63,112 bases of DNA, filler included, from Perkinsus chesapeaki ATCC PRA-425 (GCA_013115145.1; 9 parts of 9 records of this genome joined end to end with filler, not necessarily neighbours in it); one strand, 5' to 3'. Positions 14,153 to 59,230 are shown, counted from the whole stretch's first letter. The notes: generated from the letters alone by a model not told the origin. Translations and numbers: made by a program.

Positions 14153-15503
14153 GCAGTAAGTACCAGTCGGCCTACTTAAAGTACAGAGACTTCGATAAGG
14201 TTCAAACGGCTATCAGAGATGTTCGGGTCTTCTAGCGGCTTCGAAGGTGATACATTCGGTATCCTGTGGTCATGCAGTGAGTTGAGAGAGGTAAGTCACT
14301 ATTACGTATACATTACTTGTATCTAACCAGATTTTATCCAATCGTTATCTATCTAATTTTATTTAGCGTATTTTACACAATATATGGAAAATATGAATAT
14401 ATCTATATACTCGAAATAAGTAATTATACTTATATAGAAATTAACAATATTTAACCGTGATAGTGGTAAGATACGAATCGTATCATACGGCAGTGTCGTA
14501 ACGACACATGCTATAGTTACCAATGGTACATCGTCTATTATAAATATTGTTAATAACAATTTGTTATGCTTGTATTATATGCTACAATTTTCGTGAAAGC
14601 AGCTTGATCTAGGTCCACATCAACAAGACAGGCCACAAGAAACCGAAGCTTACATTCAATCTTATCGACGATAAGAGCTATGAGAGAGTCACCGTTTGGG
14701 ATGATGCGTAGGAGTGCGTTCTTAAGCCCACTGCAACAATGGACCTTTTAGGGCAAGAGCCTGTGCTATTAATCCACTGATGGCGCAGGAGCATCCTCTA
14801 GTCGCTCTGAAAGCGGTATGTGGGTAACGCCTCCAAATTTCCATTTCAGTTTGATGGATTTTGAGGGAATTTCATTCGACATTTTCAAACGCACAGCTCT
14901 CAGAGGACTAAATTTTAAACGTTACCATCCCTTTGCGGGCCACATCCCAGTAGTTAACTGCAGAAGGGTCATGTTGTGGCGTTAGGTTCGTATAACCGAA
15001 TATGATAACCAAGAAACCGGATTGACGGAGAAGGAGCTCACAGTTGGGGATCATTCTAAGATAGAGGTGGGATTCATAATGGGAGGATCTTTTCTGGGAT
15101 TACATTGATATAAGAAATGCATACTCGATGCAAACACTGTTTGCCAAACAGTTTTACAGGGTTCCCATATGTTCAATTATATACTATAAATGCTTATCAT
15201 TATAGTGTTATTATATATACTATAGTAAATACTTTATAGCACGTACATATAATACAACTATAATGATCATAATAATATAAAAATATACCATCAAGGCAAA
15301 GGCATTTTATATAGTTCTAACCCCCGCCATGAGCAATAGCAATAACTCCTTACCAATACGCGCTAATAAAAATACTTTTCTTCTGAAACGTCATTCAGAT
15401 TGGTCTCGACATTGACATTCCCTGTCTCAACGAGGTGCGCGCCTGGTGGAACATGCAGACTCGTCAGCTGGAGACAGATGTTGTTGACTTGACTTCTCCC
15501 TGA
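14153..15503 (+). CDS. Partial multi-exon gene, possible RPA70-like OB-fold
   Basis: Exon-like segments KPKLTFNLIDDKSYERVTVWDD and VRITEYDNQETGLTEKELTVGDHSKIEV resemble OB-fold strands. Model is incomplete. Confidence 0.3.
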
Positions 15504-16051
15504 AAGAAATCCTATAGGCCAATATTTCCTAATTAGTGTCATTCTATGTCACTCTGCCTAGAATATGAAGTCTATAATAGATAGTCAAGAATAATCCTTT
15601 ATGAGTCAGACTCGAGTTTATCAATGCACGGCATGGCTGTATATTATAGGGTGACACCCTAAGGGTGTTCCGCGAGAAGAGCGAAATTACGTTCCTGATA
15701 CCTATGATGAGTCGAGTATCACTAGGTTTAACTTTAAATTTATTTAAATTGAACAAAGTCAGTAAAATATGAGAGTTAAAGTTTGAAGCATTAAAACAAT
15801 GAGTTAGAGTCAACTTTAGAGCATAATGCAGTAGGAAAAAACCCAACTTCGAAAATGTGTTCGAACTTGATATTTAAGGCATCGAGCATTATACAGGTAA
15901 CTTAGAGCGAAAAATAAGTTCAATTTAAAACTTCTTTCTGAAATTGACAGCCTTCAGCAATAAAAAAATAACTCTATTTTCCGAAGTGATCTCGAGTCGC
16001 AATTATATACAATTGAATTCCAATTTAAAGCTTAAAACCCTGAGCAATACA

Positions 16052-16566
16052 TATGGACTTAAAAATTAATAATATATATAGGCATAAAAGTTAATATTGT
16101 TGTATATAGACTTAAAAATTATTAATATATATAGGCATAAAAATTAATATTATATATAGGCATAAGAGTTTTATAATATATATAGGTATAAAAATTAATA
16201 ATATATATAGACTTAAAAGATTAATAATATATATAGGCATAAAAATTAATAATATATAGGTATAAAAATTTTATAGTATATATAGGTATAAAAATTAATA
16301 GTATATATAGGCATAAAAATTAATATTATATATAGGCATAAAAACTAATAATATATATAGGCATAAAAATTAATAATATATATAGACTTAAAAATTAATA
16401 ATATATATAGGCATAAAAATTAATATTATATATAGGCATAAAAATTACTATTATATATAGGTATAAAAATTAATGATATATAGGTATAAAAATTAATAAT
16501 ATATATAGGCATAAAATTTTTATAATATATTTAGGTATAAAAATTGATAATATATTGGCATAAAAA
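16052..16566. repeat. AT-rich tandem repeat, ~25-27 bp unit, ~20 copies
   Basis: Recurring (A)TATATAGGCATAAAAATTAATA(A/T)T with variants GGTAT and GACTT. Confidence 0.95.
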
Positions 16567-16609
16567 CAGTCATGAAATGAAATCAGCCATTTCTGTTACC
16601 TTACTAATC

Positions 16610-18741
16610 ATGAGTGACTCCAGCGGCAACGGAACCCCTATTCCATCATCGGACTTTTCCACACCGCTATCAGTTGGAGAAATCGCGGCTGTCCGAGAGC
16701 TGATTGGGAGACAACTTGGTGGTGAACAGAATAACGAGGTTCTGCAGGAGAGCCCCAATGAGAAGGCGCCCTATTCGTTATCTGACACCAGACGAAGTGT
16801 GCTTTACATTGCTGAGGAAAGAAAGTTCCAATCAAAAGAGGAAGCACATACTTACCTAGAAGCTAGGAGTGGACAGCGTATGACCAGTAAGGGGGGCTAC
16901 CCTACGAAGGACGGGACATTTGTATGGAGATATCAGTGTAGCCTTGTGGGGAAATCCGAGCCCGAATGCCACTATACGGCCCAAATCCGGCGCAGCAGGG
17001 GAGAATGGACCGTTTGCCTTCCTCAACCACCACATCATAGGCATGTGCATCGTGGCAACGCAGTATCCTCAAGATCAATTCTATCAGAGGCGGCGAAAAC
17101 AGTAATAATGGATCAGATGAAGGCTCGCATGAAGCCCCGAGAAACAACAAGCAGCTTGAGGGCGAGAGAACTCATTCCTGAGGAAGACACGGTAACACGA
17201 GCTAAGCTGAAGAAAGCGGTTTACAATGCGCGGGCTTACATGAAAAGGAGCTTAGAGAAGTCAGAGGAGGGAACTGGATACACTGTGGCTTCCATAAGAG
17301 TCTTCGCTGAGGCCCACTCGGAAACTCCAGATGACCAAGATAAGGCCTTTTGTCTCGATTATACTATTGTACCTGGAGGATTCTTTTATTTCGTCTTCTC
17401 TTGCGTAAGACTACTACGCGAGAATTCGAGTTACAATGTAATTACCTGTGATTATACGGCAGCCCCGAACTGGCTGGGCTTACCCCTCTTGGTATTGGGG
17501 GCCATAGATTCCTATGGGCACTTCCGAGCTCTAGGCTTCGCGATCACCAGTGATGAAACTTGGGAGTCTGTCGCTCGAACTTTTCGAAGCATTCAGCGTC
17601 ATGCTGAACTACTTCATTGCCGGTTCGACCCTCAAGTCTTGATAGCAGATCGAGCAGATGCATTCAGCCGAGCCTTCAGGGAGGTGAGAGGAGTCGTAGT
17701 TGACCTAAATAAGATTGAAACACAATTGCTATCACTCTATAATTAATAAGAAAAGAAGCTTATTTAATATAAATATTCATATTGTCTTCACGAAAAAAAA
17801 TAAACACCTTAATCTATTATACGTGGACCATATATAACATGAAATTACAATAAAAATATAATAAATCTATGTAGGCATAAAAATTGTTAAAAAAACCATA
17901 AAAATATAATAAATCTATGTAGGCATAAAAATTGTTAAAAATGTAATATATAACCAGAAAAATACAATAAGTCTATGTAGGCATAAAAATTGTTAAAAAA
18001 ACCATAAAAATATAATAAATCTATGTAGGCATAAAAATTGTTAAAAATTTAATATATAACCATAAAAATATAATAAATCTATGTAGGCATAAAAATTGTT
18101 AAAAATGTAATATATAACCATAAAAATATAATAAATCTATGTAGGCATAAAAATCAAGGATAAAACACAAGGATAAAAGTTAATAAAAATATATCGGAAT
18201 AAAAAGATATAGGCATATATCTACGAAGAAATCTAGTTGAAAGCTATTAGGTATATAATATATAAATTTTACCCTACTAGCTGTACGGTTATAAAACCTG
18301 TTTAAAAACAGTGTTTTTGCCAGACGTTTGGTCCCACGAGTCCAACAGGGCTTACCCCACAACTACGCTGGTGCCATACAGATTTCACAGATCGAACTAG
18401 ACTTTACTGCTGGGTGCACATGTTGCGCTCCGTTAGAGGCTGGTGCTCATCGTACATCAACACGAAGACCGAAGGCTCGGCCAAATCTGCAAGCTCGAAG
18501 AGAGGCGACTTTTACCGCGACCTGAAAGTTCTCCATTGCTGCGGTAGCGACAGTCTATTCGAGGATGCAGTTAACTTACTTAAAAAGAAGTGGCACCCAA
18601 CATACCCATCCCTCTGGGACAAACTCGAGGCTACTTGGCTTCGAAGTTGGGCCACATGGTATGTTGGAGCCCACGGAGTATTGGGAAGTATTCCACGGCA
18701 CAGTTGTGCCGTGGAGGGGATTAACTCCAGTGTGAAAGGAG
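16610..18741 (+). mobile_element. Mutator-like (MULE) DDE transposase gene, intron-containing, 3' end lost in gap
   Basis: N-terminal WRKY/FLYWCH-like Zn module (WRYQC..C......HHRH), D1 ITCDYT, D2 LIADRADA, CxxH CWVH and catalytic E in SCAVEGINSSVK. A phase-0 intron at 17684-18323 joins AFRE|TFGP in frame. Confidence 0.88.
17851..18153. repeat. AT-rich tandem repeat inside the transposase intron, 6 copies, 48/58-bp periods
   Basis: GTAGGCATAAAA at 17871, 17919, 17977, 18025, 18083 and 18141. Confidence 0.95.
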
Positions 18742-19699
18742 GTACGTTTCTTTACCTGTGGAGGAACAACAAATTTATGACAAATATGTGAAATTTCATG
18801 TATAAATAGTGAGTATTGATATTATGTGATCGCCATACTATATAACGATATGACATCCACTACTGTAGTTTATAAAGCGAACCTGTTAAATGGGAAATAT
18901 AGCGTATGCAATAATAACAATGTAAGCTATTTATAGTATAAATTCTACGTAGACTAGTAGCGCCATTGCATGACGTAGAATCTAAAGATCATAGAGGAGC
19001 CAAGGCNNNNNNNNNNNNNNNNNNNNNNNNNNNNNNNNNNNNNNNNNNNNTTAATTAATTAANNNNNNNNNNNNNNNNNNNNNNNNNNNNNNNNNNNNNN
19101 NNNNNNTCCTTATGAGCATATCAACGTTAGAGCATTAAGAAGTTAGTATATGAGAAAATATCGCAAAAAAACTGTAGTTGTTAAGAATGTGTTGCGCAGT
19201 GTAGTTACTTTTTAAGTAAGGGGGTGGTGCGGAATGGGTCGTGATTACTCGGTAAGGGAGTTTCTAGCTTGAGGGTGTTATGTTATCGCGGGTGTTCCAA
19301 TGGGTTGGACGGGTGCGGTGTCGCTTGTAGTTGGCCTCACCGGCAGGTGGCTGAAACCACTGGTGGTGGGGTGTCTTTTCGAGACGTTTATGCGCACCTG
19401 ACTACATGCATGGGCATGAGTACACCTGCAGTAGTATGGCGCAAGTTGTGCCGACCCCCTTGTGCAGGGCGGTTTTCTTAGGTTTCCCCATGTACGGCCA
19501 CCACCTTATGTGTATGGCGTGTTATTGGTCAACCGAGGGACCGTGATTGCGACAGGGTGCTTGTGTGTTGGCTTCGTTCTCGTCTGTCGTTTTCGCCACA
19601 GTCGCTCTGCTGTAGTTCCTTGTCGGGTGTTGTCTATGACTACTTTCACCTTGTTATAGTTCGGCGGGGATGAGGAGTGGTTTGCCCCGGTTGCTTTGA

Positions 19700-21818
19700 G
19701 GGTGCTGAGTCACTCAACTGATGGTTGATGGTTCAGCGACGCCGAAGTGAAGAAGGCCAGAGAGATGTTTGTATCCGAAGCGTTAAAGTGCCTCAAGCTG
19801 GTGCCTATCGACCTGGTGGTGCCCTTAGCCACAGTTTTGGACGCGGTGTATACTTTCGCTTATACTGAGTTCAGAGTGCGGTCGGAGGAGGCATCAGCCC
19901 GTCGTGAGGAGCGCTAGTTAGCTACTGACAGAGAGGGTGCAGAGGTGGTCGTTAAGATGCCCAATAAGGGCAGAGAAGTTAGCTCCTTGGACGAGTGGCT
20001 CCTTGAATGTGTGGATGGGGGACGGCCGTCTGCATGGCTATCGAATCCAATTGCTATGTGGTTATGGAATACACCGCTAGGATCGCTGATATTACCAAGA
20101 GAGTGGGTATTGCACAGGCCCTACCCTATGAACGTAGGTATAGGTCTAACATGGGTGTGAACTTCACACTGTGAAGGTGAAGCGGTTAATGGAGTCGCGC
20201 AGCCTGGACAGAGCTAGAGCATTCGAGGTCTACATGCGAGAGTGCACCGATAGCGAGCTGATGGCGCAGACTTACGCGAGGTAACACCCGTTGCCTATGG
20301 CGGCAAGGGGACGGCAAGATCAAAAAAATTGGAAAGGGAAAGGCTGCGAGGAGGTCTGATGGGGCAGGTTTGACCCCTGGTGTATGCAAGTACACGCCAT
20401 CTAATTGTCCTTTCAACCCGTGCAAGTATAGATTGCATTCAGAGGAGGTTAGTCAGGTAGGTGACGCGTGGGCCCTTTGCAAGGGCAAGCCGGGTACTGG
20501 TTATGGTTGTGGGAAGCCTGGTAAGGGAAGTGTGGAGGGCGAAGCTCCCAAGAGAGCGAAATTGCAGAAGTAATTGTTAGGCCGTGTTGGCTCAGTCGAC
20601 CAAGTTGTCTCAACTTACTGGTTGTGAGTTACTCACAACCTACTGTAGGCATAGTGGTGGCGAGCCTAGGCAGGCGAGGGCTGGTTTCTCCTTGTGTGTG
20701 AGTCCGTAATGGTAGTGGTTGAAGTAGATAGGGATTCATCTCTGCGAGTGTCGGTTGTGTTGGTCAATTTGTGTTGGCTGATAGTGGTGTCTTGGTAGGT
20801 GGTTGTTTTTGTACAGCATGCCGGGTCGCAGACCTAGTCAGGCTAGAGTGGCGCGCAACAAATGTAGGCATCTGCATCAATGGGATAGGACGTTGGGGGT
20901 ATTTTTGAGTATGCCGCTGACAGAGAACGACAGGATGGGTCAGGAGCACCGTGGGTTGTCCAGTGGGATACGGTTGATTTCCCGGGGGAGCATTGGGAGG
21001 CAGTGAGCGAAGTTGTAGCGATTCTCAAGGACAGTTGTCAGGAGTTCGGTGAAGGTAACCAAGAGTTCTTGGATGCCTTCTTTGGGGCGGACAGCCTGTC
21101 CGGGACAGGGAGCTCGAGACTGAGCTAGCGAAGGGTTGGGAGGCCTTGGAGGGTGTTGCTGAAGAAGCGGCAGTGAAGGTGGCGGGTGTTTTGGATAGAT
21201 CAGGGACGTGTGTGGCCGCGGGCGTCGAACCTCACCAGCTGTTAGATGGAGCATGTCCCCCATCCAAGCTTCGGTGGGCACTGATGAAGGTCCTCGCAGT
21301 AGCTACGTCTGATTTCCCGCGGGCGCGGGACGTATCGACGATTGAGGGCTGGGGGAGCGACTACTTCGATGTTGGTAAGTTGGAGGGTGAGGAAGATCTA
21401 GATATTTGTGATACAGTACTGTATCACATACTGCAGTATGTTGCGCGAGGGATGCCCCATCGGTTTAGTGCCGCGTCTTGTTGAGAAGAGTGCTTGGCCG
21501 CCGTATAGAGCCCCGGGTGGGTTGCGTGCTGGGGACTCCCCAGTGGTGAGCCTGAGGATGGGGATCTGAGATGGGCCATGGAAAAGCTAGTGAGCCAGGA
21601 CCGGTCAGCTCTCCCTATAGGGGGAATGTCAGGGGATTGTAACCAGACTCAACTCAAGGATATAATGTTTTGGTTTACCGGTCTTATGGGAGTAGGCTGA
21701 TGATTAATGGTCAGGCGTAATCCCCAATAACCGAGTTAATGAAAAGCCCTTGGGCTCAAAACCCCCGGACCTAATGACGGTCTGGGAGGGAGAGGTGGGA
21801 AGAAAGGAGTCGGGACGT
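19700..21818 (+). mobile_element. Decayed retroelement-like remnant (gag-like CCCH finger, pre-RT-like segment)
   Basis: Stop- and frameshift-riddled frames. C-x6-C-x4-C-x4-H at 20385-20438, LRWALMKVLA...EGCPIG...SAWP segment at ~21270-21500, purine tract at 21784-21809. No RT YxDD motif seen. Confidence 0.4.
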
Positions 21819-22368
21819 NNNNNNNNNNNNNNNNNNNNNNNNNNNNNNNNNNNNNNNNNNNNTTAATTAATTAANNNNNNNNNNNNNNNNNNNNNNNNNN
21901 NNNNNNNNNNNNNNNNNNTTTAGCATTCATCAATAAGACTTGCGTTTGTCAAAATGGATTTAAGGTGACTAACTGCGCGGGTCTCGTATAACATAGGTGC
22001 AGATTTTCACGTTTACCTTTTTTCGAGTTGACGGACCGCTGTCCTATCCTACCGTGTAGATGTATATATTAGGACTGTATAGGAGAAAAAATTACCTCAA
22101 AACTCTCATTTTTGAAGAAGTTACGGCTGCTCATCGATTCTCCCTCTCTAGATGACCGGTACTGTATATTTCCTGTATTCCACAGTTATTTCCGTCGTCA
22201 ATTTGGCGACTGAAATGGCGCGCGCAAGAGGTGTAGCTAGACCTTCACGTTGCGTGAGACATGCGACGCCGCTGACTCGCCAGATCGAACGTGACTGGTT
22301 TAAACTTCAAACCAAGGGTCTTCAAACTTTGAAGAAGATTCCACAGCAATTAGTTGCTTTTGGTTGTG

Positions 22369-25045
<2,677 letters not shown>

Positions 25046-55376: not shown

Positions 55377-55499
55377 NNNNNNNNNNNNNNNNNNNNNNNN
55401 NNNNNNNNNNNNNNNNNNNNTTAATTAATTAANNNNNNNNNNNNNNNNNNNNNNNNNNNNNNNNNNNNNNNNNNNNTTTACTTCTGGTTTTTTTTGTTT

Positions 55500-55546
55500 T
55501 TTTTGTTGTTGTTGTTGTTTTTTTTTTGTTGTTTTTGTTGTTTTTT

Positions 55547-55578
<32 letters not shown>

Positions 55579-55580
55579 GC

Positions 55581-55653
<73 letters not shown>

Positions 55654-55698
55654 GCTGTTGATGTTGTTGTTGTTGTTGTTGTTGCTGTTGTTGTTGTT
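55500..55698. repeat. (GTT)n microsatellite with GCT/GAT variants
   Basis: Direct reading. It abuts a contig end. Confidence 0.97.
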
Positions 55699-55759
55699 CT
55701 CCTCTCGCTCTTATCAGGGGTGGAGTATCGAATCAGAATATCGATAATGGGTTCCTTCT

Positions 55760-57148
55760 CGTTTGGAAATTGGAAAGTCAATACGATCCTCATCAGAAAA
55801 GGGAGATTAAAAGTGTGAGTTAGCGCCCCATTGGATATGAACGCATTTGTAATCAGTAATAATGTCAGGAACGTGTTCTCAGACGAGCTAGGCTTGCGGA
55901 TAAAGCTTTGTTCTGTGGTGCTAAGATCATTTGTGAGATCCAGCGATACATAAGCGGCCCGAAAAATGCCGAAGTGAGTCTTGAAGCAGCAATGCTATAA
56001 CCCCGTCAGAGGCGTTCCGTTTCAGGTCGACCTGGGCATAGCATTCAATGCGGGTTATGCGATCGAGGGACCTGTCGGAAGTGACTTCAAGATTGATGCG
56101 AGCTACCTTGGAGCGGATGTGAAATGGACACTAACCCTTCAAGAACTCACTAGGGTTTACGATGTACTAGTTTCGTATTCTTGAATTACGGAGGCACGTT
56201 CGCCGTCACTGAGAAATAATTCCAAACTATGGATGAATTCGAGATCTTCGCATCCAGAATAAACAACACGAATGCCAAATCGCTAGGTAATTATCTATAC
56301 TTTCCAGGTACCACTGATCATCAGTAGTAAGGTTTATCTCATGGCATCGGTAATATTATTGATCGGGATAGCCTTCCTGACAGCTCCTTATACGTCTCCT
56401 CTGGGTGAGTAGCTTTTATTTCGAAGGTACATACGAAGAGTTCCTTTATGTTGATCGACTATATTCGTCTAGGAGAGACTTCTCCTGAGCCTCGTGCTAT
56501 CTACGCTTTGGCATTAACCACACTCACTGGCCAAACAGGACTATCGTATAGGGTGACCAAGATACCACGCAAGGTAGATGCAGCAGCACAATGCCAATCA
56601 CTTAACCCAACTTATCCGTGTTAGGTCGGATGTCTAGTAAAACCTGAAGCTCTGGGAGAAGTAGAAGACACGGTATTCACAGATGAGTTTCCAGAGTATT
56701 TATTCACCATTGATGTTGATGTTAACCGGGTGATAGAGGCCAGAGGTATGTGCGCGTGGTCTCCTTAAAGGTTAGGGCTTCCACTCAACCTGTCGCACTA
56801 TGTGGTCGTCTAGATTCGCGAACTTGGAGCATCAAATCCCAGCGCTTCACGTATAGCGTCTGTCTGTTTCAGGTTTATCCGAGATTCAGAGGGATATATT
56901 CCGCCAGATGTTCTGTTCCTTTGTCGAAGGGGACTGGGAAAAGGCTAAGTCAATTGCGGATGGACCTCCTGCGATTGAAGTGGGCCCTGCAAGGGCTATT
57001 TTGGAGTAAACACCAGGATGGGCTCTCTGTCCGATGGATAAAAATGGTTCGTTGGGTAGCCTTAATCTTTTCTTCGAGGTTCATGGAGGCTTCTGGAGAT
57101 CGACCCCCTGAAGGTTGGAAGGGCTGGCACATCATCCACACCATCTGA
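55760..57148 (+). CDS. Class III (alveolate-type) adenylate cyclase-like protein, C-terminal exons, catalytic motif degenerate
   Basis: LADKALFCGAKIICEI, GIAFNAGYAIEGPVGSDFKIDASYL, and C-terminal DG...FMEASGDRPPEGWKGW. Confidence 0.75.
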
Positions 57149-57256
57149 TTCCCTCATATGGCGGTTGAAATATCATCGTTTCCTGGTGGCAACATTCGCC
57201 TTACATGCACTTTGTAATTTCCACCAAGCTAGTAAATGTCATGTTCGGGGGTACTT

Positions 57257-57281
57257 CAGGGTTCGAGTCCCTGCATCGGAA
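57257..57281 (+). pseudogene. 3' fragment of tRNA-Glu (T arm plus acceptor strand) at the left edge of the tandem unit
   Basis: CAGGGTTCGAGTCCCTGCATCGGAA is identical to 58769-58793. Upstream sequence is unrelated. Confidence 0.9.
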
Positions 57282-57294
57282 AGTACATTATTTT

Positions 57295-57496
57295 AGCTTT
57301 CGTGATACGCAAGGGAAGAGCAGGACGAATGAGAGATAATTTGGGATTTGACAGCTGGGAAGGTCCAAGTGTACCCCCTGTCCCCCCCTGAGCAATGTTG
57401 GTCATCAGCCTCGAACATCTTGCGGGACTCAACATTGTCCAGGGGTGCGGGTAGAGCATGTCAGATGCTAACACGTATCCCACTATGACAGCTTTT
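57295..57496. ncRNA. Unassigned structured ncRNA candidate (~200 nt), copy 1
   Basis: Bounded by T-runs, with a closing helix and two internal hairpins, lying between convergent tRNA genes. No known family signature recognised and strand unresolved. Confidence 0.45.
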
Positions 57497-57502
57497 AATA
57501 AG

Positions 57503-57575
57503 TAGCAGCTCCTTGTTTCGATCAAGGGACCTTTGGGTTATGAGCCCAACACGCTATCCACTGCGCCAAGCTGCT
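57503..57575 (-). tRNA. trnM-CAT: Initiator tRNA-Met(CAT), copy 1
   Basis: A1-U72 pair (AGCAGCT/AGCTGCT), anticodon loop CTCATAA, eukaryotic initiator T loop GATCGAAA. Confidence 0.95.
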
Positions 57576-57646
57576 CGACTGCGTATGTCTCCTTAAACAT
57601 GGGTGGAAGACTTCAGTAAAACAGAGGCACAAAGCATAGATAACTA

Positions 57647-57718
57647 TGCACCGTCCGGGAATTGAACCCGGACCATCTGCTTGGAAGGCAGATATCCTAA
57701 CCATTAGACCAACGGTGC
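57647..57718 (-). tRNA. trnG-TCC: tRNA-Gly(TCC), copy 1
   Basis: GCACCGT/ACGGTGC acceptor, TCTGC-CTTCCAA-GCAGA anticodon arm, GTTCAAT T loop. Confidence 0.95.
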
Positions 57719-58720
57719 TTCCGATCTGGACGATATAGATGTTGGCAAGTCATACAAGGCATTGAACAGGCTAGGGATCATCTTAAATTCCAAAATAAAA
57801 CAATTGCTTAATGCGCATCATGTGGTTCACTGGTACAGATTGGTGCCAACGCAGTCACTACTCATGCTTGTGGCCCGTGCCTGCAACTTGCGCACTCAGA
57901 ACCCGAGATAGTGTGACTTTAGTGTAGTAGTGCATGGATTCCAAATCTTGGCCTTGGGCATAGCTCTGTGCCTACACTAGTGCCATATCATCGTAAACTG
58001 AGAGAGTTCTGGCCGAGATGGTATGAATTAGATACGCTGCTCAGATGGCTGACCGCTGTAGGGTGACAGCGAAGTAACGCGTGTCACAGCTCACTGCAGT
58101 CATCTTTGACACGATTTGTAGGCCGTCGATCGTTGGCAGGCGTTAAAAATATGTTGGGTAGCAGTGTGACAGCCTCAGTTAATAATAAGAGTAGACAATA
58201 TAAGATCTTTTTATTAGTCTTGCCGTGTCACCGCCGATGACTCGCCGGTTGGTGATGGTGAAGACTGTCCAAGCCTTGTAGTGCTTAGGCGGCATGCAAC
58301 TGTTCTGTGGTGATTCGCGCCCGAAAATTGGTTAGACCCGTCACCGCTCTGCTAGTGTGACAGTTGAGGATTGTTTGGTATGAACTGCATGCGCATGCAT
58401 TCAGTCATACCAAATTGTTGAGTTTCGCTGTATCTTTGCAAGGTCACACTCTGTTGCAGATGATGAAATGTTGTCCACGGCGATGTATGATTGAGGGTTA
58501 GTCAATTCTGATGGGTCGGGTTGAGATGGTGACCGTGGCGACGGAACGGGTCGGGAGGAACGCTCTGATTGCGATCTAGTACGGAAATAACTGGCTCTAG
58601 CATGCCGGAGGCAGGCGCGGCGAATCAGTGAACGAACAGAAGTCGCTTTTCGAAGTTGCGCAGTTCGTTGCATGATGTTTCGGAAAATTGGACGGGATCA
58701 AATTTGATCTTTAATGCCAG

Positions 58721-58793
58721 TCCGATGTAGTCTAGCTGGTTAGGATTCGTGGCTTTCACCCACGCGACCAGGGTTCGAGTCCCTGCATCGGAA
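58721..58793 (+). tRNA. trnE-TTC: tRNA-Glu(TTC)
   Basis: TCCGATG/CATCGGA acceptor, CGTGG-CTTTCAC-CCACG anticodon arm, GTTCGAG T loop, TTTT shortly downstream. Confidence 0.95.
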
Positions 58794-58806
58794 AGTACAT
58801 TATTTT

Positions 58807-59008
58807 AGCTTTCGTGATACGCAAGGGAAGAGCAGGACGAATGAGAGATAATTTGGGATTTGACAGCTGGGAAGGTCCAAGTGTACCCCCTGTCCCCCCC
58901 TGAGCAATGTTGGTCATCAGCCTCGAACATCTTGCGGGACTCAACATTGTCCAGGGGTGCGGGTAGAGCATGTCAGATGCTAACACGTATCCCACTATGA
59001 CAGCTTTT
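58807..59008. ncRNA. Unassigned structured ncRNA candidate, copy 2
   Basis: Appears identical to 57295-57496 (offset 1512). Confidence 0.45.
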
Positions 59009-59014
59009 AATAAG

Positions 59015-59087
59015 TAGCAGCTCCTTGTTTCGATCAAGGGACCTTTGGGTTATGAGCCCAACACGCTATCCACTGCGCCAAGCTGCT
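59015..59087 (-). tRNA. trnM-CAT: Initiator tRNA-Met(CAT), copy 2
   Basis: Identical to copy 1. Confidence 0.95.
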
Positions 59088-59158
59088 CGACTGCGTATGT
59101 CTCCTTAAACATGGGTGGAAGACTTCAGTAAAACAGAGGCACAAAGCATAGATAACTA

Positions 59159-59230
59159 TGCACCGTCCGGGAATTGAACCCGGACCATCTGCTTGGAAGG
59201 CAGATATCCTAACCATTAGACCAACGGTGC
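59159..59230 (-). tRNA. trnG-TCC: tRNA-Gly(TCC), copy 2, ends at contig break
   Basis: Identical to copy 1. Confidence 0.95.

Follow-up and report, generated by a model that had tools for sequence, protein, structure and literature searches.

In yeast, stem-loops cleaved by RNase III (Rnt1) downstream of rRNA and other genes provide fail-safe termination. Structured Pol III RNAs linked to tRNA genes are found in the tRNA-pre-miRNA units of MHV68 and in the dicistronic tRNA-snoRNA genes of plants. The spacers of the yeast rDNA array, NTS1 and NTS2, hold a fork barrier and an origin, and in Entamoeba the tRNA genes form tandem repeats whose 1-2-kb units include non-coding spacers. The locus of Perkinsus chesapeaki described here has something in common with each of them. 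Its hairpin, like the Rnt1 stem-loops, is a long stem soon after a highly transcribed tandem-array gene, a position from which the yeast stem acts in cis on nascent read-through. However, the yeast stems belong to Pol I and Pol II transcripts and are AGNN-capped, whereas the Perkinsus hairpin follows Pol III genes and has an apex that is not conserved. As in the MHV68 and plant units, a structured RNA past a tRNA gene could be made from the tRNA promoter, and the tRNA-Glu of P. olseni is without a run of four T (T4) before the module. The viral hairpins and plant snoRNAs abut the tRNA and are freed by tRNase Z, whereas in Perkinsus 58-88 unconserved nt separate the hairpin from tRNA-Glu (33 nt from 5S), a T4 intervenes in P. 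chesapeaki and there are no conserved C/D or H/ACA boxes. The likeness to the yeast NTS, a conserved non-coding module by the 5S gene together with an AT-rich segment flanked by inverted repeats, is positional: the sequences are not similar, and the Perkinsus module also occurs in a tRNA-gene array. The tandem tRNA-gene units recall those of Entamoeba, whose spacers are short tandem repeats, whereas the Perkinsus spacer shares two modules with the rDNA spacer.

The element lies in a window of 63,112 nucleotides (the whole stretch of DNA that was analysed), on a piece of 3754 nt that is, by sequence identity, the entire GenBank contig JAAPAO010001359.1 of P. chesapeaki (assembly GCA_013115145.1). 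At its start the contig has a long (GTT)n/T-rich microsatellite (55477-55700) whose minus strand reads as a Thr-rich ORF. It carries a partial gene, with product 'hypothetical protein FOL47_001480, partial [Perkinsus chesapeaki]', and five tRNA genes on which ARAGORN and Rfam agree. A position-by-position comparison revealed that 57257-57718 equals 58769-59230, a perfect direct repeat of 462 nt at an offset of 1512. The tandem unit is 1512 bp long, and 1.3 units are present on the piece, starting ~250 nt past a cyclase-like gene; the spacer that follows tRNA-Glu occurs twice, in identical copies. The array is laid out as follows.

57257-57281, plus strand: 3' 25 nt of tRNA-Glu(UUC) at the left array boundary, the same as 58769-58793 of the complete tRNA-Glu
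57282-57501, plus strand: spacer copy 1, from the end of tRNA-Glu to the 3' end of the initiator tRNA-Met(-)
57502-57575, minus strand: initiator-type tRNA-Met(CAU), 59.3 bits; A1:U72 and the GAUCGAAAC T-loop, read from the Rfam alignment
57647-57718, minus strand: tRNA-Gly(UCC), 71 bits
57719-58720, no strand: 1-kb array spacer, with the module GTGTGACAG - AT-rich - CGTGTCACC at ~58160-58240, as aligned to the array spacer and the rDNA NTS of P. olseni
58721-58793, plus strand: complete tRNA-Glu(UUC), 100% identical to P. olseni tRNA-Glu
58794-59013, plus strand: spacer copy 2, equal to copy 1, with the extended hairpin at 58881-58971
59014-59230, minus strand: second initiator tRNA-Met (59014-59087) and second tRNA-Gly (59159-59230), with the contig end at 59230

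Because the repeat starts within the T-arm of tRNA-Glu, the upstream tRNA at 57257-57281 is only a 25-nt fragment, and the full order tRNA-Glu(+), spacer, tRNA-Met(-) is visible at the second copy (58794-59013). An earlier note on this DNA had placed a structured RNA of ~200 nt at 57295-57496, locked between convergent tRNA genes. The tRNA-Met(-) on its right is confirmed; on its left there is only the remnant, and the complete tRNA-Glu precedes copy 2. The interval is part of the post-tRNA-Glu spacer found in every unit of the tandem array and not a discrete 200-nt RNA gene. Since the two spacer copies are identical, comparing them gives no covariation information. Elsewhere on the piece, the motif TGACAGC has five sites in unique sequence (56378, 57349, 57486, 58064 and 58167), all on the plus strand, for ~0.5 expected; the repeat copies lie at 58861 and 58998, and the motif is missing at the aligned places of the P. 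olseni spacer. To the left of the array boundary we noted an A-box-like TAGCTTGGTGG at 57221-57231 (-) and, at 57104-57118 (+), CCCCCTGAAGGTTGG, which is similar to the 5' arm of the hairpin; both may be relics of an older array unit.

The counterpart array of P. olseni was reached through the neighbouring gene, which was searched exon by exon: an exon compared with a representative protein library matched the product of the contig itself and a P. olseni protein, which led to its orthologues and finally to their contigs. This gave P. olseni orthologues and one from P. marinus, whose scaffold ends within the neighbouring gene, and the comparison covers three contexts in two species. Downstream of the orthologous gene in P. 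olseni (loci L013 and L014) lies a tandem array that repeats every 1484 nt, ordered as hairpin element, tRNA-Ala(+), 1.13-kb spacer, tRNA-Glu(+), hairpin element, tRNA-Ala. The element comes after tRNA-Glu in both species, and the two tRNA-Glu are identical. The gene after the element differs, being tRNA-Ala(+) in P. olseni and the inverted initiator tRNA-Met and tRNA-Gly in P. chesapeaki. The same arms were found in the P. olseni loci L009, L011, L012, L013 and L014, and again in the rDNA spacer of L012. Metagenome contigs gave 0 matches to the tRNA-Glu ... tRNA-Met synteny pattern, and the initiator-tRNA anchor gave 7 loci there, which are not from Perkinsus and none of which has the spacer. 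These seven contigs, from JGI and other metagenomes (L001-L007), hold tight Asn-Thr-Ile-Leu-Met tRNA clusters, partly 2-7 nt apart, in which tRNA-Met shares with the Perkinsus initiator tRNA an exact stretch of 37 nt from the T-arm to the anticodon arm.

In the spacer alignments, only 57357-57459 has a counterpart in P. olseni, comprising the GGGAAG motif and the extended hairpin. The features of the spacer are listed below.

57291-57294, plus strand: T4 run 10 nt past the end of tRNA-Glu; P. olseni has only ATTTAT there
57295-57351, plus strand: 5' part of the spacer, with the Sm-like, GAGAG and 'template' motifs; no P. olseni counterpart, ~39 unrelated nt being found there
57357-57362, plus strand: GGGAAG motif, kept in the P. 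olseni array copies and missing from the rDNA-spacer copy
57369-57459, plus strand: extended imperfect hairpin, the conserved core of ~91 nt, with an apical part of ~29 nt
within 57369-57459, plus strand: hairpin tiers GUGU/GCAU, CCUGU/GCGGG, CCCCUG/CAGGGG, a 2x2 internal loop and CAAUGUUG/CAACAUUG
57385-57400, plus strand: 5' arm CCCCTGAGCAATGTTG, 15/16 identical to P. olseni
57430-57445, plus strand: 3' arm CAACATTGTCCAGGGG, 14/16 identical to the P. olseni array copy; the rDNA-spacer copy is the same except for one extra A
57460-57501, plus strand: 3' part of the spacer, with the AGCAU hairpin, ACA and the second T4 (57493-57496); not conserved, P. olseni having a different sequence that leads into tRNA-Ala

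The 16-nt arms are as the earlier note had quoted them and are conserved in P. olseni. They are 29/32 identical between the species, with all three differences in the 2x2 internal loop. The remaining spacer aligns with 68 matches, 79 mismatches and 65 gap columns (46% identity), so the retention of the 28 paired arm positions by chance would have a probability of ~0.46^28. The apical part differs in sequence and in length (29 nt in P. chesapeaki vs 46 nt in the P. olseni array). Also common to both species are the upstream GGGAAG, a GTAGAG flank and a downstream G-rich stretch. Judged from these alignments, only the central ~91 nt of the spacer (57369-57459) is evidently under constraint.

Folding points to the same segment. 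The whole 202 nt proposed as an RNA reach -65.1 kcal/mol on the plus strand, against -60.0 +/- 4.5 in dinucleotide shuffles (z -1.12, 23/200 shuffles as good), and the minus strand gives z -1.41. The 93 nt from 57368 to 57460 (+) reach -37.4 kcal/mol (z -2.8), a value attained by none of 200 shuffles, and the long hairpin is all that stands out within the spacer when folds are compared with shuffles. When the piece is scanned in sliding windows of 70 nt, the hairpin has z ~-3.3 and is not at the top, several other windows being in the same range. The strongest local fold on the piece (z ~-5) is at 57610-57646, where a GCATAG/CTATGC hairpin separates the 3' end of tRNA-Gly(-) from its T4. The T-runs that had been taken to bound the RNA (57291-94 and 57493-96) are where they were quoted, and the closing helix between GTGATACG (57302-09) and CGTATCCCAC (57474-83) exists, with 8 bp and a 2-nt bulge, but is not in the minimum-energy fold; as an RNA feature it fails, its segment being absent or unalignable in P. 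olseni. The small AGCAT/ATGCT hairpin is likewise present at 57455-69 but not conserved in that species.

Searches for known families returned little. At E<=10, Rfam has no match to the spacer, whether the whole piece or the 220-nt spacer alone is searched. With the piece, the spacer alone and both P. olseni versions as queries, it gave only tRNAs, rRNAs and sub-threshold miRNA look-alikes, and the miRNA-precursor models score 15-18 bits on the element against thresholds of 44-104 bits. The idea of an unassigned structured RNA thus survives for the conserved core, which belongs to no Rfam family, but not for an RNA of ~200 nt with the proposed boundaries and motifs. Word searches found no homologue of the 93-aa ORF that spans the spacer or of a 66-aa exon, and three ORFs have no Pfam match. 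On the minus strand there are an A-box-like site at 57480-90 (1 mismatch) and a B-box-like site at 57407-17 (2 mismatches), 73 nt apart, with no T4 after them on that strand; chance alone would give 1.4 and 7.4 matches as good as these. The A-box-like site is within non-conserved sequence, and these weak, minus-strand matches, partly in non-conserved sequence, do not show an independent Pol III promoter for the spacer.

On the best reading, the element is not an snRNA, RNase P/MRP, H/ACA or telomerase RNA. An Sm-class snRNA was rejected: the Sm-like AUAAUUUGG (57337-57345) has no counterpart in P. olseni, and no Rfam snRNA model matches. The U2 and U4 genes of Perkinsus are known and adjoin SL RNA genes elsewhere (PMC3101222). 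The resemblance to ciliate telomerase RNA lay in a Pol III-sized unit and, on the minus strand, in UGUCA ahead of a C/A-rich stretch, AAUCCCAAAU, seen as a template. This 'template' would specify ATTTGGG and not TTTCGGG, which is the candidate telomere repeat of the sister species P. marinus (PMC3622300), and its region with the boundary motif (57337-57352) is absent from P. olseni; a ciliate-type telomerase RNA was therefore discarded. CCCGAAACCC is absent from the whole piece with up to 1 mismatch. In the CR-I-like GGGAAGGUC, only GGGAAG is conserved, and neither a P4 partner nor CR-V was seen by eye. RNase P/MRP RNA was set aside, since neither the piece nor the element has a hit to either family in Rfam at E<=10, and no complement to GGUCC(A) was seen by eye in the 3' part. 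The hint of an H/ACA RNA came from an ACA in a region (57460-57496) that is not conserved in P. olseni, and the snoRNA was dismissed, as the hairpin before the ACA has by reading 5+5 bp, a 1x6 internal loop and no pocket, and no Rfam snoRNA model matches. Readings by eye as SECIS, K-turn/U4-like, U6-like or C/D-box motifs did not hold, with partner motifs missing or the region not conserved. The 5' part of the spacer was also considered as a decayed 5S rRNA gene (CGCAAGG ... GGGAAG.TCC), and its local alignment is no better than those of shuffles.

The hairpin recurs in a third version in the rDNA spacer of P. olseni, 33 nt past the 5S rRNA gene, with the core 5' arm starting 44 nt beyond the T5 terminator of that gene. 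In L012, 5S is at 15166-15287, the hairpin at ~15320-15455 and SSU from 16443, which places the hairpin between the two genes. This copy has the same arms, nearly perfectly complementary, around a loop of ~70 nt. Its 5' flank aligned to the P. olseni array copy has a local score of 38, against a shuffle maximum of 35 (0/300 shuffles). Across contexts, the loop measures ~29, 46 and 70 nt, and the element lies 33, 58 or 88 nt from the upstream gene (58-88 nt after tRNA-Glu, 33 nt after 5S), with a distance to the next T-run that is not fixed either. The hairpin module sits past Pol III genes in tandem arrays of Perkinsus, at a distance of 33-88 nt, behind tRNA-Glu in both species and behind 5S in P. 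olseni. No description of an NTS hairpin in Perkinsus came up in a literature search. Locus L012 (JABANP010000245.1) leads from the neighbouring gene into the first array unit, made of the hairpin and tRNA-Ala, which passes without a break into an rDNA unit, 5S - spacer - SSU - 5.8S - LSU (14390-22483), and its similarity to the array unit stops at 15027. Either the tRNA array abuts the rDNA array at this junction or the assembly jumped via common repeats.

The two kinds of spacer also share a second module, GGTGACAC - ~45 AT-rich nt - GTGTCACC, present in the tRNA-array spacers of both species and in the P. olseni rDNA spacer, and placed in the same order relative to the hairpin in the tRNA-array and rDNA spacers. 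It is found at 58160-58240 of the window, 10695-10775 of L013 and 15757-15845 of L012, and forms an inverted repeat, GGTGA.TGGTGACAC and CTGTGTCACC, around the ~45 AT-rich nt. It may serve as an origin or a promoter. Related GTGACAG/GTGTCAC motifs occur here and there in the spacers, and at 15500-15760 of L012 the P. olseni rDNA spacer has a further family of inverted repeats, CAACTTTGCGCAC and GTGCGCAAAGTTG, on either side of an AT-rich stretch. To judge by these shared modules, it looks as if the tRNA-array unit was built on a backbone like that of the rDNA spacer.

All copies of the hairpin fold into three-tier stems of 23-27 bp or longer, with plus-strand z from -2.8 to -4.65. The P. chesapeaki copy has z -2.8 on the plus and -1.85 on the minus strand, and the P. 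olseni copy after tRNA-Glu (L013) has -3.6 and -2.5. For the first copies after the gene in P. olseni, the plus-strand values are -4.0 (L009, with -3.4 on the minus strand) and -4.65 (L011), and for the rDNA-spacer copy the values are -4.25 and -4.9. The plus strand folds better in these two tRNA-array copies (P. chesapeaki and L013) because several of the pairs are G-U. The rDNA-spacer copy folds about equally on both strands, which fits a DNA-level inverted repeat equally well. The outermost helix pairs in all three contexts through different pairs (G-U/A-U/G-C and U-A/G-C/U-G), two pairs having changed on both sides. In the main stem, 12/15 pairs are invariant, and the stem is therefore conserved as sequence, which lends no support to RNA pairing. 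Orthologues had been proposed as a source of covariation: the arms are kept in P. olseni, but overall covariation is weak, with 35/500 shuffles reaching the same level. The comparison thus shows arm sequences under strong selection and gives only a hint of pairing at the RNA level.

The T-runs suggest how transcription might meet the module. The T4 at 57291-94 is probably the ordinary Pol III terminator of tRNA-Glu, and the spacer ends with a second T4 (57493-96) just before the convergent tRNA-Met. In L013 and L014 the first T4 after the P. olseni tRNA-Glu comes only past tRNA-Ala, so any transcription of tRNA-Glu there must take in the module as well, and Pol III may make one dicistronic transcript of tRNA-Glu, hairpin and tRNA-Ala. 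The hairpin apex of the first copies in L009, L011 and L012 has a T5 where L013 has TTTCT. These terminator features are seen at L013 11464-11670 and L009 3560-3575. At the P. olseni 5S gene, a T5 is followed by the hairpin and then by a T4 ~40 nt further. The tRNA-Met(-) (57502-57575) has CTTATT after its 3' end and no run of four or more T on its own strand within the spacer, so its transcripts may enter the spacer antisense.

We consider it rather probable that the hairpin is a conserved cis-acting module of array spacers and belongs to none of the proposed RNA classes. How it acts is a more doubtful matter, and an RNA-level mechanism of read-through, the one we prefer, is put forward tentatively, from its position, the weakness of the terminators and the plus-strand G-U pairs. 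Pol III would pass the weak or missing terminator of the upstream gene and transcribe the module, whose long stem would form in the nascent plus-strand RNA. The stem might mark the read-through transcript for cleavage or decay, or slow the polymerase before the next T-run or gene, and the second T4 (57493-96) would serve as a fail-safe stop, specific to this species, ahead of the convergent initiator tRNA-Met gene. In this lineage, no established mechanism deals with Pol III read-through by means of a hairpin.

The same observations could be explained at the level of DNA, by double-stranded or cruciform DNA that is a protein site, a replication-fork barrier or a site of recombination and homogenisation shared by rDNA and tRNA arrays, without any RNA role. 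We regard this as unlikely, if well short of negligible. It would explain why arm sequence is kept rather than pairing (the 12 invariant pairs of 15), why the rDNA-spacer copy, a hairpin between the 5S and SSU genes as expected of an NTS element, is a near-perfect palindrome equally stable on either strand, and why the second module, in the same order in tRNA array and rDNA, resembles spacer architecture. It does not explain why the tRNA-array copies fold better on the plus strand, through G-U pairs for which DNA or the other strand has A-C, or why the outer helix changes sequence yet keeps RNA-type pairing, and an arm spacing of 29 to 70 bp is odd for a dimeric DNA-binding site. A stand-alone hairpin RNA, made by Pol III transcription from the upstream tRNA or 5S gene and diced from the conserved arms like a pre-miRNA or hairpin-siRNA precursor, seems improbable to us, and we rate no higher the corresponding function, a dedicated array hairpin transcribed by tRNA/5S read-through and processed to small RNAs that act on arrays or other targets. 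The element does have the features of a pre-miRNA, with a stem of at least ~22 bp (at least 23 bp in every copy), conserved arms and a freely varying loop; the only Rfam models that touch it are the sub-threshold miRNA-precursor models, and a review (PMC6027434) reports that P. marinus has Dicer-like proteins. However, those scores are far under threshold, there is no known target, the two arms are equally conserved, and the base of the hairpin is 33-88 nt off the upstream gene instead of abutting it.

Two further readings have much less in their favour. The arms could be terminal inverted repeats of a miniature foldback element that targets the 3' flanks of Pol III genes, alike through recent activity and not through host selection. 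Such an element would fit an inverted repeat whose interior varies in length and which follows Pol III genes at a comparable place in three different contexts, and Dada DNA transposons do target Pol III genes in Perkinsus genomes (PMC3706591). We nevertheless judge it very unlikely. By eye, no direct repeats or target-site duplications flank the ends of the inverted repeat in the three versions checked, the flanking GGGAAG and GTAGAG are also common to both species, and no copy lies outside arrays and rDNA in the ~100 kb of Perkinsus loci compared. Dada itself was rejected as a source: its targets in P. marinus are tRNA genes, but these transposons insert within the genes and are without terminal inverted repeats. 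The most improbable reading is the original one, of a single Pol III ncRNA of ~200 nt (57295-57496) from a diverged known class. The interval is indeed bounded by T-runs, the quoted helices exist, and the minus strand has the box-like matches described above, but the unit as a whole hardly departs from shuffles (z only -1.1 and -1.4) and has no Rfam match at E<=10 even when the element is searched alone. All class-specific motifs are in segments that P. olseni does not share, the 'template' is incompatible with TTTCGGG, U2 and U4 are already located elsewhere (PMC3101222), and the first T-run probably belongs to tRNA-Glu.

The analysis removes from the list a tempting but unsupported candidate for a telomerase, MRP, snoRNA or snRNA. 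What is left is a hairpin module of ~90-130 nt, probably acting in cis in array spacers, with arms conserved in two Perkinsus species amid diverged surroundings, and this module links the tRNA-gene arrays to the rDNA spacer. The rDNA spacer is a standard diagnostic target for Perkinsus species, and a segment conserved across species is for that reason of practical interest for assay design. If the hairpin were indeed processed to small RNAs, a hairpin RNA borne on tRNA or 5S trailers would be a class not described in alveolates. Should the module handle Pol III read-through or feed a small-RNA pathway, it would offer new insight into the repeated Pol III genes of a trans-splicing parasite rich in tRNA arrays.
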